Origin: Amoeboaphelidium protococcarum X5
Lineage: Eukaryota > Fungi > Aphelidiomycota
Length of the DNA stretch: 20,456 bases
Assembly (NCBI GenBank): GCA_023515725.1
Contig: JALDTO010000157.1
Span: forward strand, 9,919 to 30,374
Direction of reading: 5' to 3'
Shown: positions 4,271 to 14,736 of the stretch, piece after piece
How the letters are laid out: each line of letters begins with the position of its first letter
How positions within the stretch are numbered: position 1 is the first letter of the stretch
Position numbers and translations under genes: made by a program
Notes under the pieces: generated by a model
What the model saw: only the letters and a program-made list of their open reading frames with translations
Told to the model about the DNA's origin: nothing
Database searches by the model: none

Positions 4271-6949
4271 ATGGAACGTTGTGAGAGTATGATTGTGAAT
4301 GATGGCTAGAATCCGCAACTAAATATCAAGATGAAAGATTATTTCAGTCCTCTGCCTATTGAGTCATTGTTCATGAATGGTGAAGCAGATAATCGTGATA
4401 CCAAGAGTTGTAACAATGTTAATCGTGCTCAGGAGAAGCCTTAGACTTCGGAATAGAAAGATCAAGCTCAATAATAATAATAGTAGTAAGATTTTGACTA
4501 AACTTTTATGGTGGATGACCATCAGCAACTTAACGTTGACTAATCACAGTTGAGCATTGTCTCTTAGAATTAAATATTACCTAGTAAAATTCATGGCAAT
4601 AATGACTTTGATCTGTCTGTGATTATTATGGACTCTTTGGATGAGATGGTGGATCCGGGGAAAATGTCCCCTATTGGATAGTCATCGTTTAAAGATGATC
4701 GTATGGCGGATGGCTCCATTCACAATGCCTTTAATTAGTGCACTAATAATTCAGATTAACGTCTGGAAAGTGGTGGTGTAAATGATGATAAACTATTTGC
4801 TTTTACTACTCCTTACAAGGCTTAGTGTACTTAAACACCAGCTTTGTAGACGCCGTTTGGTAATTAGAATGTCAAGAAGAACAGCTATGATACTGCTACC
4901 AGGTCGAGATTGAGTCAGTTGATTTGCGAATTGGATGATTTGGACAATATTGAATGTGGTATTGATATAGGTGTGGATGATGGTGATAATAATATGAATT
5001 CCGATAATCAGTTATTAGAGGAAGAGGATGATTAAAGCTTCATAATGCCATTGAAGAAGTTGAAGATGAATGATAGTTATATAAGTGTTTAGGATGACGC
5101 GGAGAACGTTGAAGGTGAGTTGCACAAAGCGCAAGACAAAATATCTCAGTCGTTTAAGGAGGCTGTTGTCAGTTCTGGTCCGAATATATTCAATTTTGCT
5201 ACTCCAAAGGCTAGTAGTAGCAAGTAGCCAACTGGTAGTAGTGCATTGACTTTTAATGCTCACAATGCGAGATAACAGACTTCAATCATCAACACGAGTG
5301 AATTGTTGAACTTTAGTAAAGTTCCTCTCGATGCTTCTGGAATGTAATCTGTGCTTGATTATACTTATAATGATGGTATTTAACCATTGGAGTCGCAGGA
5401 TATTAAGACTGAATCGGTATAGCAAACTAATGATAATGAAGACGAATTTGAGTAGTTGGATGATACTCCAGCTCTATTTTAGTTGGTAGACAATGAGTAG
5501 ACGATTGACACTATTAAAACTGATACTTTACTCCACTATTAGATCCCTCAATCTCGCTATAGTGTGAAAAATACTGGTGATTTTAGCACGGATTAGAAGC
5601 ATCATATGCAAAGTTAAAACTCTTACCAGGCGTAGTCTTAGTCTAGGTAAAAGACATTTGATCATTCAGAGAGTCTCCGTTAGTTTGAAAAGTAATTTGA
5701 TGATATTATTGCAATGAGATAAAGCAATATTGGTGTTTAAGTAGACTTGGATCGAACGCCTACTAGGAAGAATGTTTCTTCTAAGTAGGAGTATGTAGGT
5801 ATGCAACAGTAGTCTGTGTTGTTGGAGAAAGCATTTCAAAAGCTGACTGCTGATAATTCTACTTATACCGGCATTTAATCTTATTCACGTCAATATGAGG
5901 CCGATAAGGCTGATTATAATTAAGAAGTTTTGGCCGCTAGAAGTTGCTCTGAACTAGTTGTTTTGGATGTGAAGAGATTTTTGACGCAAAGCTCTTATTA
6001 TGTAAATCTGTAACATCTGTGTATCAACTGGATTGAAGGCATGACTCCTCTTGGGGATATAGAATTTGTGAAGGAGTTGAGATGTTTACAGAATCTGTAT
6101 ATCATTGGACATAATATCACTAATCTTCCAGAGTTGCCTACTTCTCTTCAGCTGTTGAATGCTTCCTGTAATTTGATAAGTAGCGTTGACAGCGTTTATG
6201 AACTACAAGTCTTGAGTCTTGATAATAATCCTCTAGATTCACTATCTATTCACTCTGATACACTACAAGTTTTGTCTTTACTCAAGTGTCCACTGAGATA
6301 AAGATTGGAGTTATCTGCTGACTCCTTGAAGAGATTGGCTCTATCCTAAGGCTAATGGAGGTCAGAAGACGCGATCAACTTTCTGTTTGGCAACCTGCCT
6401 CGAATGAAGTCTCTATTAGAATTGTGTTTAGTAAATATGGGATTAATGGAGATTCCTGGCTCTATAAAGTCTTTGAATTCATTGGAACGATTAAACCTCG
6501 GTTCTAACATGATTGACAAGCTTCGGGTTGTCGATGAGTTGCCATCTCTCGTCAATCTAGATGTCTCTAATAACAAGTTGCGTGATATTGGTAAATGCTT
6601 GCGACTCTTAAAGAAGATGAATTTGTAATAACTATATCTTTGCGGCAATAAATTCTCAAGTAAGTTCACTGTATTCAATGGTCTACATAAGGAGCAAGTT
6701 CCATAGCTAGTGTAAAGTTCATTCTCAGCTGAAGCTGAATCATCTCTCTCTATGGACATTGATAATGGTAAAGATTCTGCAGTGGATGATCTCACTTATA
6801 TTAATCACATATTCTACAGACATGCAGTGTTTAAAGTTCTCAAAATCCAATGGCTGGATGGTTTACGCGTTGATAAAGCCGTAAAAATCAAGAATGAGAG
6901 ATAATATCAGCACGCAAAGAAGTAACTGTCTCTTGTCTTGAGAAATTGA
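4271..6949 (+). CDS. Leucine-rich-repeat protein with long disordered N-terminus, likely Cdc11/Nud1/SepK-like SIN/MEN scaffold (about 892 aa)
   Basis: Read codon by codon to the LRR region with no in-frame TGA; the frame ends at TGA 6947-6949. C-terminal LRRs (LQLLNASCNLI, LERLNLGSNMI, LVNLDVSNNKL) and an LRR cap (FYRHAVFKVLKIQWLDG). N-terminal motifs KDYFSPLPIESLF and YDTATRSRLSQLI resemble blocks I recall from fungal Cdc11/SepK. The CDS is secure; the ortholog call and exact start are less so. Confidence 0.8.
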
Positions 6950-10596: not shown

Positions 10597-10769
10597 CTTC
10601 TTCGTTACAAAACTTATTTACTGAAAGTGTACGACTATCGATAAGAATTGCTCTGAAACGGTAAAATGCCGAGGCAACTTTTTCGCGAATTGCCCGTGAT
10701 TGCACCGTTTCACTTCATGATGTGAAACGGCATTTGAATTCAAATAGATTCTCTTTTCTCTTGAAAGTA

Positions 10770-11147
10770 ATGGTGTCTCAATTTAATACAAGTGATTATA
10801 AGATGAACAACTCAAAGAACGTGTTCAAGAAGATAACTGCTGAAGAACTGGAGAATGCCAAAAGAAAGAACACTAATGTCAATACTATCAAGTCTTCTTA
10901 GCAATGGATTAAGAAATTCAATGACTATATCCGAGACGAAGGCGAGTATGTGGAAGATGACTGGTATAAAACGGAAGATAGTAAGTAGTATTTTTTGACT
11001 TCCTTGGAATGTTCTTCCTGTCCGTTCGAAGATGGAAATTAGTTCAAGGCAGAGAGTCTGAAAACTGGTTTACGCACGTTGACGCGTGCCATTACTGCTG
11101 AGCTGCCAAGAGATGTTGTGAACTTTAGAACTGATCTTATACTGTGA
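10770..11147 (+). pseudogene. N-terminal remnant of a Crypton-type tyrosine recombinase (catalytic domain absent)
   Basis: Reads FKKITAEELENAKRKNTNVNTIKSSQQWIKKFNDYI ... DGNQFKAESLKTGLRTLTRAI...VNFRTD, then TGA at 11145-11147. A shifted frame in between gives DFLGMFFLSVRR. Together these rebuild the NTxKST.W.vxxF..Y / L..FF.SVRK.DG..Y...SL....L.R pattern I recognise from Crypton and ZMYM/KCTD1/QRICH1 proteins. Confidence 0.6.
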
Positions 11148-11415
11148 ACGATTGATGATATCGTAAGCTCTGTCATCATTACAATAAGATCTGTGACAAT
11201 GCGCAAACAATGCACATTTATGCTGGGCAAAATAATGTTCATCATATTCACCTGAGTCGCTAAATCAAATTGACAAGTAACCGCAATAGTTAATGATAAT
11301 GAATAATATGGAACGCTCAAAGTTTGACTGGCATTTTACCGTTGATATCTGAGCAATTAGTTGGCAATAGCACGCGGCAGCTGTGGGAATTCCCGCTCAT
11401 CGTGCCGACTGCGCA

Positions 11416-11523
11416 AAAATTCCACTCACTTTGCTCGTGTAATTTTATTTTACAGAATTGCACTCACTACGTTCGTGCAATTCTTCATTGTGAATATAGC
11501 ACTCACTACGTTCGTGCAATATT
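11416..11523. repeat. Three tandem palindromic units (10-bp arm + 11-nt spacer + 10-bp arm), period 38-39 bp
   Basis: aaaattccac-tcactttgctc-gtgtaatttt (11416-11446), agaattgcac-tcactacgttc-gtgcaattct (11454-11484), aatatagcac-tcactacgttc-gtgcaatatt (11493-11523). gcactcactacgttcgtgcaat is repeated exactly at 11460 and 11499. Confidence 0.92.
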
Positions 11524-11637
11524 GCAACGAAATCTTCACGAGCTTCGCTCATTCCGATTTCGGGAAAAGATGACGCAGCCGGGCGATTTCACGGAAATTG
11601 CCCGCTGCAGCGTGCAATTACCCATTAGAACCAACTT

Positions 11638-12004
11638 CAAGTACTGCCAAGCGGATAAGCCATTGGAACTGCTTATCCGTTTGGATCATGGGCGCACCCG
11701 GCACCGTACGCCCTATCCTGGAGCCTTCCCTTACCTCGAAGGCTCACCCCAACTAGCTGATCGCTAGACAAAGCCTACAGTGACCAAGCCGAATCCAGAG
11801 GCCGTGGGTGCAGTCTTTAAGGGTGAGCACTAAGCATCTGGTATGCCACTACGAGTAGGCGCTTATCTGCACGAGTAACCGGTGCAGAGAGCTAAAGGCT
11901 AGAGCCACCGGTAAAGGTGTCTCCGACGAGTTCCCAATCGTCTACGGGGAAGCGAACAGTAGTACTTGCCGACCGATTAATCGATTAGGGGTACCTACCT
12001 CCCC
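11638..12004 (+). ncRNA. Candidate large structured RNA or structured mobile-element end, family unknown
   Basis: GC-richer island with a closing helix 11638-11647/11959-11968 and nested helices, including a 14-bp stem 11647-11660/11671-11684. G.U pairs favour the + strand. No convincing ORF. Confidence 0.5.
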
Positions 12005-12150
12005 GGTTATAAACAATGTAATATATTATAACATGAATATCATTCAGAGTAGAGATGCAGCGCAATTAGAAGATGTGGAGAGGCCAACAGCCGTGGATTG
12101 AATCAGAGTGCTTGCTCACTTAACTCGCATTTTGCAGTCAGCAATCTAAG

Positions 12151-12207
12151 GAGCCCAGAGAGCAATTGTGCCAATAATACACCATCTCAGAGCGCCGCAT
12201 ATAAGTC
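12151..12207 (-). pseudogene. Possible calponin-homology (CH) domain gene fragment with nonsense mutation
   Basis: Minus strand reads DLYAAL*DGVLLAQLLSGL, matching the CH signature DL..AL(R/K)DGV.L..L, with TGA at 12187-12189 where CGA (Arg) would fit. A GTAAGT...CTGTAG intron-like segment (12267-12321) lies just upstream. Confidence 0.4.
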
Positions 12208-12583
12208 GTGCTATAGAGGACTCATATAGGATACCCCAGAATACTGAGGAGTTTAAAAGGTGACTACTACAGTTATAGATAATATGAATTATGGTGAAAT
12301 AGGATAAAGTATTGTACTTACACAAATTTGCAGCAGTCATGTCATCATCAGACGCCAATTCATAACTAAGCTCTTTATTTCATATAAAGATTCCCATTTG
12401 ATGCTTGTAGCGCTTGGCTCCATGAGAGATCCAAAAGAGATGTATTACCAGTGAAGCTCATTATATCACAACGCTATTCACAATCAAGAATAGAAGATTA
12501 ACGCGCCATACCAGCCTTTTATGCACAACAACAGCTCACACTTGAGTCACTGATCTCACACCTGTGACATGCTCAACAACACA

Positions 12584-12603
12584 AGAGAGAGAGAGAGAGA
12601 GAA
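12584..12603. repeat. (AG)n microsatellite
   Basis: Uninterrupted agagag run of about 9-10 units in non-coding sequence downstream of the kinase. Confidence 0.9.
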
Positions 12604-13065: not shown

Positions 13066-14736
13066 TCACTAGGCACCTGGATGACCAAACCATGGATGTG
13101 ACAGTACTTGGTCAATACTCGGTCTATGTACTGGATCACAGCAAAGCATCCACTGCACCAAATCTCGCACCAGAGTCTGAGGGAAACCGGTATCAGAGCT
13201 GACTTCAAATACACAAGGACCATTGGGGACGTAATGTGCCTCATCGAAATTATCCGGCAAATCTCCATAATTCATCTCATACAACATCATGCCCATCGCA
13301 TAAATGTCAGCTTCAGGACCAATAAAGGTCATACCAGACCGTACCTCGGGCGGAGAGAAGATTGGAGTGCCATAAGATTTGAACGGGCGTATTCCAGGAT
13401 TCTCAATAGGTGTTTAATAGAATGCAGCATGTCCAAAGTCTATAAGCTTCGCCGTGAGATCAGCATCAACCAGAACATTCTCATCTTTCAGATCCTTGTG
13501 CGTAATGCCACAGTGATGGAGTGAGGCTACAGACTCTGCAATCTAGTAGAATATCCTCTTCTATACCGGCTCGGGCAGCACAGGACCACGATGTCGACCG
13601 CGGCGACAAGTCTTACTAAAGCCACCACAGACTCTCAACAAGCCAGCAAGACTTTAATCATTACCATTACGAGGTATAATCACACGCTACTCAGGCATGT
13701 TCAGCTAGCCAGAGTTGAGCACTAGACGATCAAACTCGGAGATCCTAGAGGCAGACAGAGATGTTGGCATCTTATGATTCGGCAAGAACAACCTAGTCAA
13801 TACAGCAGGCAGCTTAGTCAGCGGATCCAATGATTCTCGATTCCAAGCATAACCACCGCACTCAGTCACCAGGAACCAGCATTCATTGCCCTCCCAGGAA
13901 TCGATGTACTTGATAATGTTCAAATGCTAAGGAGCATACTTCAACAGAGCAATCTCAAGGCAACTAGGCTCTCCCGTACGAGGATCCTTACACAATCTAG
14001 AACTGTGGATCTGGCTTTTACGCATAATCTTAATGGCAACCTTCTGGCCATCGGAACATCTAATGCCCTAAACAACTATACCAAACGTTCCATAGCCAAG
14101 CAGCATTGTCAGACAGTAGTCATTAACATGACGATCTGAGATGATACACCGGGCTAGCAGAGCTTTAGCTTCATCCACACATCTCCTTTCATGCTTGGCA
14201 TCTTCGTCTTCCTCCTCAACATCAGCAGCGGCGGCACTATCAAACATGGAATCTCTATTGCATGTGGCATCATGAGCACTCGGCATAGCTTCTGACTACT
14301 ACTGCTACTACTACATCTGCGTATTGTCAGTCAAAGGGCCAACATGAAATATAGTCTTGGGAGTGGATGGCATGTCATTTTCAGCCGAGAGATCCAAAAT
14401 CTATTGCCAATCCTAACGATCATTCAATGAAGGGAAGCGAGGCAAATCTTTAGGCGTTCGCTGTGTGGACTCATCAGACTCGGTGATGGACATGTGCAGT
14501 GAAGGCAGGGTGAGACCAGATGCATCAGACAAGGTTCGCTACCGAATCTCTTCCTCTGAGGACGGCGATACCAGGGATTGGGTAGACTACTTGGGGGACT
14601 CCACCATGCTGGACAGGGACGGCACTTGATATGTGGGACCATTCAGGACTTCCTGGAAGCTGTCAACATTATCATCGTCGGAGGTTTGCGGTGGCGAGGT
14701 ACGACTGTCGGAGGACTGCCCTGCTGCGCCTTTCAT
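13066..14736 (-). CDS. Ser/Thr protein kinase, CAMK group, PASK/PIM-like (556 aa)
   Basis: LGYGTFGIVV, VAIKIMRK, HKDLKDENVLVD, KLIDFGH, YGTPIFSAPE, GPEADIYAMGMMLYEM, HRPSIDQVLSHPWF. The track fragments 14068-14286, 13705-13923 and 13069-13332 share one frame from ATG 14736 to TGA 13066-13068. The KDEN catalytic loop is typical of PASK/PIM. Confidence 0.93.

Follow-up and report, generated by a model that had tools for sequence, protein, structure and literature searches.

An apparent multibranch RNA in Amoeboaphelidium protococcarum is very probably the hairpin-tipped end of a mobile element with Fanzor-like cargo

CRe-1/2/3 of Chlamydomonas reinhardtii are non-autonomous Helitron2 elements that carry Fanzor1 genes, and they have been described as having terminal hairpins, one-ended transposition, truncated copies and extra sequences at their junctions (Bao and Jurka 2013, PMC3627910). 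Hairpins are a general recognition feature of Rep/HUH enzymes, and imprecise, 'fuzzy' far ends have been reported for Replitron-1 (PMC10288648). In addition, the ends of Fanzor and TnpB elements can have a role at the RNA level: published omega RNAs combine the right end of a transposon with a guide taken from the flank, do not need to overlap the ORF, and occur at ORF-less 'ghost' loci (Saito et al. 2023, PMC10432273).

In A. protococcarum X5, a first-pass annotation of a stretch of 20,456 nucleotides (hereafter the window) had proposed a free-standing novel ncRNA or ribozyme of about 370 nt at 11638-12008, with the non-coding end or UTR of a mobile element as a secondary option. The headline proposal falls, since the part common to the family folds no better than shuffled sequences, covariation is almost nil and the stretch is the end of an element. 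It is the secondary option that survives, based on the common start base, the dispersed copies and the element that continues behind them, and window positions 11682-12010 very probably form the end of a transposon rather than a gene for a cellular RNA. The copies represent a new family within a known type of mobile element.

Like CRe-1/2/3, this family has a Fanzor-type gene without a transposase of its own, a hairpin right at the terminus, one over-represented end with many copies truncated from the other, and extra or captured sequence at the truncated junction. Other features of the CRe elements were not found here, namely a terminal sequence of 50-200 bp in common with verified Helitrons, asymmetric terminal inverted repeats, insertion after T-rich tetranucleotides and the frequent target-site duplications (TSDs) of 7-19 bp, and the conserved terminal module is, at ~310 bp, much longer than the CRe ends. 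As in Helitron2 termini, a 5' T is followed by a hairpin within 0-2 nt (GGAT...ATCC enclosing GGGCG...CGCCC), whereas the asymmetric inverted repeats and the 3' hairpin of the other end are missing, the far end offering a stem of only 3 bp by eye. The family is also like the right end of IS200/IS605 and the ends of Replitrons (PMC10288648) in its subterminal hairpin, TnpB-type passenger and lack of terminal inverted repeats and TSDs, but it differs from them in lacking an HUH gene and a fixed target motif and in having only a marginal direct similarity between its two ends. Helitron1, which is defined by 5'-TC, CTRR-3', a 3' subterminal hairpin and insertion between A and T, was rejected, since the full copies begin with TGGAT... 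and finish with ...AGCGCT and the flanks are not A/T-specific.

A search of the window's own 23.6-Mb genome, together with alignment of every copy with its flanks, revealed that a dispersed repeat begins sharply at 11682 (TGGAT...) and that the DNA upstream of this base is unrelated between copies. All the helices listed in the first-pass annotation, including its two strongest, the closing helix and the 14-bp stem, are present and complementary in the window, but the ~370-nt interval is not one unit: it straddles the repeat boundary and consists of 44 bases of unique flank joined to a GC-rich, hairpin-tipped element end. Three of the proposed features lie outside the family, because the copies have their common start at 11682 with unrelated DNA upstream: the 14-bp stem (11647-60/11671-84), the 'kissing' loop ggaact (11665-70) and, in the closing helix, the 5' arm (11638-47). 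All three are made of copy-specific flank or junction DNA and are absent from every other copy, so that their complementarity stands while their standing as features of the family does not.

Alignment with the homeologous locus C207 assigns 11628-11681 (unstranded) to host flank and junction filler, of which 11628-11668 is homologous to the empty site C207:176751-176794 and ~11669-11681 has no counterpart there. The 14-bp stem forms a copy-specific junction palindrome (11647-11684, unstranded) outside the repeat family, in which the second arm (11671-84) is an inverted copy of the adjacent flank arm (11647-60) and ends in TGG, overlapping the first bases of the element. Of the two arms, only the first is present at the homeologous empty site (C207:176700-176860).

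From 11682 to 12599 the window holds, on the plus strand, a truncated repeat copy of 918 bp (element positions 1-918), as delimited by genome search and homeolog comparison. It opens with the terminal hairpin (11682-11718, unstranded; GGAT/ATCC outside GGGCG/CGCCC), which is located 1 nt from the element end and forms the tip of a conserved, GC-rich terminal module of ~314 bp (11682-11995, unstranded). The family has about ten copies in the genome, nine of ten starting at the same base; the exception, located at C66 and probably continuing on C106, begins at element position 24. Five further young copies are 92-97% identical, with a range of 92-94% for the window copy against these five, three old copies are 69-80% identical, and fragments are also present at contig ends. 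A covariance model of the conserved core (CM R1, 11813-11971) finds exactly the family's own 10 copies genome-wide, and the terminal 26-mer, with up to 3 mismatches allowed, is found only in the 6 young copies.

Each copy runs on beyond the module into 0.6-5.6 kb of the same element, and it is the far end that varies. It lies at element position 918 in the window copy, at 1148 in the C233 copy, at about 1229 in the old copies C264 and C212, at 1332 in the C205 copy, at 1968 in the C155a copy (which lacks the nested small repeat at 1425-1803), and at 5966 in two full copies, C98:1470847-1476812 and C155:118028-123973, which are 93% mutually identical. The module and element positions 1049-1229 are the only parts that can be aligned between the young and old subfamilies (69-80% identity). 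The old copies C264 and C212 lie in mutually homeologous loci and therefore predate the duplication of these loci, whereas the young copies postdate it. Since the module is retained on both sides of this event, the family has kept this end through a long period of activity.

A terminal inverted match between the two ends of the full copies is not significant (320-352 of 500 shuffles reach its score), and the short direct similarity between them is marginal (9 of 500). At C98, 357 extra bp (C98:1476813-1477169) separate the far end of the full copy from the host. This piece closes with 20 nt (TACGCCCT-GCCCGGTGCCT) that are similar, in direct orientation, to element positions 25-45, with a score attained by 9 of 500 shuffles. 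Together with the start of the C66 copy at position 24, this likeness may reflect a nick site within the loop of the hairpin or a short direct repeat at the termini. About 0.6 kb upstream of the old copy at C136 lies a 112-nt sequence related to the 357-bp piece.

The 371-nt interval that was originally delimited folds at -134.8 kcal/mol, with z-scores of -2.78 (plus strand) and -1.67 (minus strand). Folding against dinucleotide shuffles on both strands, a check that the first-pass annotation had itself called for, went against it: the part common to the family (11682-12010) reaches z -0.64 on the plus and -1.18 on the minus strand, which is not better than the shuffles, and the next 329 nt give z +1.99. 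Nor is a plus-strand RNA, for which G.U pairs had been cited, favoured by the evidence, since both strands score alike and the only transcript seen is minus-sense. Covariation is almost nil. Across nine aligned copies the RNAalifold covariation terms are unfavourable on the two strands (+2.92 and +3.35, with similar energies), the proposed helices are 89.4% paired compared to 88.0% in column shuffles, and only 4 pairs have changed on both sides, a count that is also attained in 50 of 500 shuffles. In the old copies, the terminal gggg/cccc helix has not been kept.

The sole exception is the terminal hairpin, which has been kept via compensatory or register changes in three sequence versions; in the diverged old copies it reads GAGGCG/CGCCTC or GACGCG/CGCGTC with matching outer pairs, the compensatory changes being based on three old copies and hence on one or two events. 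The individual folding z-scores of the hairpin are mostly unremarkable. Apart from it, structured RNA in general was rejected for 11682-12010 by the shuffles and by covariation. Element positions 1-330 have a G+C content of 55% compared to 40% in the remainder of the copy, and the module contains many helices because of this G+C-rich composition in a 40% background. The multibranch RNA fold is thus mostly a by-product of high G+C and flank-specific pairings, and a false candidate for a novel RNA system is removed. Candidates of this kind originate here from a G+C-rich transposon end in an A+T-rich background, where palindromes in the flank, arising by chance or at the junction, help to mimic a multibranch RNA.

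The failure of the first-pass annotation to match known RNA classes is confirmed, as no Rfam family matches the window at gathering thresholds. At permissive E-values (up to 10) the region 11300-12300 yields chance-level matches only (E ≥ 1.8), and an entire 6.8-kb full copy yields nothing at E up to 1. With no covariance-model match near the gathering thresholds, snRNA, RNase P/MRP, SRP, ribozymes, riboswitches and any other Rfam family were ruled out. A tRNA scan of the window and eight loci found none, therefore a tRNA-derived SINE head is absent from these sequences, and an invariant 23-mer gave 0 matches among metagenome contigs. Conservation within the module is blocky, and its longest invariant run, 18 nt at 11831-11848, has a length that none of 5000 shuffles attain.

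Such strictly conserved blocks, the G+C contrast and the z-score of the original interval could be read as marks of a free-standing structured ncRNA or ribozyme gene, or of an RNA partner of the neighbouring putative Crypton-like remnant. This reading is scarcely credible and has been largely refuted: the strongest helices are flank-specific, the z-score is lost once the flank is removed, every copy continues into the same element, Rfam offers no match, the other copies are not adjacent to Crypton-like DNA, and no discrete RNA is visible in the available transcript contigs, which by their nature cannot show RNA ends.

The neighbouring block itself (10650-11627, 978 bp) is absent from the homeolog C207, which has 8 bp (CACTGTAT) in its place. 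According to the homeolog comparison, this block was inserted separately from 11682-12599, which lies about 50 bp away. The other nine copies of the module have unrelated flanks, none of which adjoins relatives of 10650-11628, and a Crypton end or Crypton partner RNA was ruled out by this lack of consistent association; with the two blocks inserted separately, the speculated partnership is refuted on the criterion that the first-pass annotation had itself set. Weak relatives of 10650-11627 are found at C207:712956-713133 and C212:698492-698687.

With 91% identity to the window, the homeologous locus C207:176593-180684 provides an empty site for the two blocks, since neither 10650-11627 nor about 11669-12599 is present in it. 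Many loci in this genome are paired in the same manner, with ~90% identity over at least 4-9 kb (the window and C207, C264 and C212, C98 and C158, C205 and C155, C233 and C207), which looks like a duplicated or hybrid genome, and the locus pairs keep empty sites for the young insertions.

The insertion signatures of four copies were compared with such homeologous empty sites. At the hairpin end, the window copy has ~13-14 nt of snap-back filler and TGG(A) microhomology, the full C98 copy has TGG microhomology, the C233 copy is clean, and the C205 copy is preceded by 84 extra nt that include a 63-nt multicopy repeat. At the far end, the window copy displays (GA)n microhomology and the C205 copy ATT microhomology, the C98 copy is followed by the 357 extra bp, and the C233 copy by 144 bp that are 99% identical to a Fanzor element at C146 (C146:650360-650503) plus more foreign DNA. 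The host sequence replaced amounts to ~13 bp in the window, ~100 bp at C205, 178 bp at C233 and 8 bp at C98. Furthermore, the C155a copy is followed by 67 bp that are 98.5% identical to C146:652443-652509, another piece of the same C146 Fanzor element. The chimeric far ends of these two independent copies suggest template switching or multi-fragment capture. None of the copies has a TSD, and no target motif is evident, the flanking bases of the copies displaying no AT or T-rich preference. The 63-nt sequence at C205:82925-82987, between the flank and the constant end, is present at 15 or more loci with 94-98% identity and is not a tRNA according to ARAGORN.

The first-pass annotation had suggested that Fanzor or TnpB genes be sought among the ORFs flanked by the copies, and this proved correct, as the 6-kb copies carry a degenerate Fanzor-like gene. 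Read with TAA and TAG as Gln, a code with which Pfam matches whose sole internal stops are TAA or TAG are consistent, the 6-kb copies contain long ORFs opposite the window's plus strand, of 524 aa in one copy and of 346 and 341 aa in the other. Inside the second full copy, C155:119978-120127 matches the Pfam family Cas12f1-like_TNB at the cut-off (26 bits, E 2.3e-4); a Pfam search with ten stop-free ORF pieces of the 6-kb copies gave only noise. The 6-kb copies also hold a C-terminal TnpB/Fanzor signature, SSQRCSLC...GDTNAAANI, which aligns with the C-terminus of the C146 Fanzor (E 0.007-0.04), and when the latter was compared by blastp with all six frames of the element, similarity was confined to the C-terminal zinc-ribbon/RuvC-III stretch. 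Between the two full copies the Fanzor-like genes differ by frameshifts, and in both the RuvC-I Asp seems to be missing, the position aligned with it by eye reading GEGQ. Only two 626-bp fragments related to this gene are found elsewhere in the genome. The module shares the strand of the Fanzor-like gene and lies at the element end downstream of it, separated from its stop by ~3.5 kb that contain other ORFs and nested repeats.

The C146 locus contains a largely intact Fanzor1-type gene on the minus strand, its region being given as C146:652709-654939 and also as C146:649938-652168. It is divided between two overlapping frames of 602 aa and 190 aa, owing to either an intron or a frameshift, and, under the TAA/TAG = Gln code, includes the motifs GIDVNRG, TSQRCSNC and RDVNAARNI.

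Parts of the window stretch are held by four sequencing runs of one study, which were available as contigs only and were taken for RNA from their poly-T loose ends, a GT-AG joint and depths that vary between 0 and 2300x within 3 kb. One contig of 1,382 nt (depth ~30) derives from the C66/C106 copy and consists, in minus sense, of element positions 25-707 followed by 756 nt of the C66 flank. It skips the equivalent of window 12267-12321, a 55-nt minus-strand intron (GTAAGT...TAG; joint 12266>12322, ends CT..AC in the window's orientation), and since it skips this stretch, the minus strand gives rise to a spliced transcript in the C66 copy at least. The DNA of every copy retains the intron. On the minus strand of 12187-12599 the window copy has ORF remnants, and the spliced frame stops at a TGA at ~12187-12189. 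Because these remnants and the intron lie within the repeat, 12100-12465, the sequence described in the first-pass annotation as a 'dead calponin-homology gene cut off by the insertion', belongs to the mobile element and not to host DNA. Contigs that skip 10649-11628 come from the C207 homeolog. Contigs with poly-T loose ends before ~12880 point to a polyadenylation site of a minus-strand transcript just to the right of the insertion, and depth reaches up to about 2300x at 13103-13400.

The minus-sense contig, which runs from element position 707 through 25 and then into 756 nt of flank, is what might be expected if the module were a Fanzor omega RNA scaffold, that is, a minus-strand RNA of ~300 nt with a flank-derived 3' guide, the truncated copies being 'ghost' loci. 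As at the omega RNA and ghost loci described earlier (PMC10432273), a conserved non-coding transposon end lies on the strand of the nuclease gene, is kept in copies that lack the nuclease ORF, and can be read into the flank; the module is at the element end downstream of the Fanzor-like gene and is the most conserved non-coding part. Known omega RNAs, however, overlap the stop codon of Fz or lie near it, and both inverted repeats are retained at ghost loci (PMC10432273), unlike the present module with its 3.5-kb distance, its intervening ORFs and nested repeats, its lack of inverted repeats and its one-sided truncation. Moreover, the Fanzor copies are frameshifted and seem to lack the RuvC-I Asp, the minus strand has no support from fold or covariation, and according to the covariance model not one of the other Fanzor loci, which number at least 40, has the module next to it. 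In the copy that is transcribed the first 23 nt are missing, and the long read-through from it resembles ordinary host transcription. An omega RNA role is quite improbable on this evidence, and it could coexist with a role as a transposition end.

For the copying of the family, we give about an even chance to a DNA-level route in which the module is a cis-acting, hairpin-tipped end from which one-ended copying starts, with a Rep/HUH enzyme of the Helitron2-like type supplied in trans. The terminal hairpin would be read as single-stranded DNA and would serve as the signal for both recognition and cleavage; copying of the element would begin at this end, and synthesis or peeling would run inward and often stop early, a one-ended transposition that would leave truncated copies. 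This route is favoured because the hairpin 1 nt from the terminus is kept by compensatory change, because a Fanzor-type passenger gene is accompanied by RepHel genes in the genome, with RepHel-bearing elements at C179:638581, C314:12125, C83:2903 and C207:38143, and because the spliceable minus-strand intron is retained in all DNA copies. It is also favoured by two precedents, the Fanzor1-carrying Helitron2 elements (PMC3627910) and the fuzzy ends of Rep transposons (PMC10288648). Against a Helitron2-like route, the element has no 5'-TC, no CTRR-3', no terminal inverted match and no target preference. It holds no Rep gene, and a genome-wide search for an autonomous partner that shares the terminal 26 nt or the module returned only the family's own copies. 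The microhomology, filler and target deletions, in addition, fit break repair mediated by a polymerase or an RT better than clean HUH strand transfer.

Poly(A)-less tails of non-LTR elements, such as those of R2 and of stringent-type LINEs and SINEs, combine a constant 3' stem-loop end with 5' truncation, microhomology and template-switch chimeras. The present family is like the R2-type tails, by description only, in its constant end with a stem-loop, its truncation, microhomology and chimeras, and its lack of poly(A). It is conceivable, if rather unlikely, that the module is the 3' recognition module of a non-autonomous retroposon, whose minus-sense RNA of up to 6 kb would end in ...AUCCA-3' (window 11682); an RT encoded elsewhere would bind this end and prime on a broken or nicked target, and early stops would produce 5'-truncated copies. 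With a structured 3' end as its starting point, retroposition accounts just as well for the truncation, microhomology and chimeras, and it also accommodates the constant end with random truncation at the other, the presence of microhomology at both junctions, the target deletions and the extra nucleotides. The two 6-kb copies share their end base, which lies just upstream of the Fanzor-like ORF as a transcription start would, the minus strand is transcribed, and a search for the RT family found at least 27 loci in the genome. None of these RT loci is inside the element, however, and the 6-kb copies have neither an RT/endonuclease ORF nor poly(A) or a terminal repeat. No RT element or partner LINE with the same tail was found genome-wide, there are no TSDs, no Rfam ribozyme was found at the 5' end, fold and covariation are not significant, and the spliced 55-nt intron is kept in all DNA copies. 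A non-LTR retrotransposon or its dependant was rejected on similar grounds: only 5' truncation and junction microhomology fit, while RT, common tail and TSDs are absent and the intron is kept.

The DNA-level route and the RNA role could also be combined. In a very doubtful dual-purpose version, the end would be both a DNA hairpin origin and a minus-strand Fanzor guide scaffold of ~300 nt, located 3.5 kb from the nuclease and read into each flank. If this were true, each truncated 'ghost' copy would programme a new cleavage site, and the insertions rich in filler and microhomology would be footprints of Fanzor-made breaks. The family is small and datable and combines a constant hairpin-tipped end with one-sided truncation, untidy junctions, Fanzor-like cargo and preserved empty sites. 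It provides a compact natural data set on how Fanzor-carrying elements copy in eukaryotes and on whether their ends double as guide-RNA genes.

Two parts of the element also occur as repeats of their own. The sub-repeat at element positions 1425-1803 (~300-550 bp) has independent occurrences at many loci. The plus-strand sub-repeat at window 12406-12570 (~170 bp) is likewise found alone at many loci, and it lies 0.6-0.9 kb downstream of other Fanzor genes and on their strand, for example ~0.9 kb downstream of the Fanzor gene at C146.
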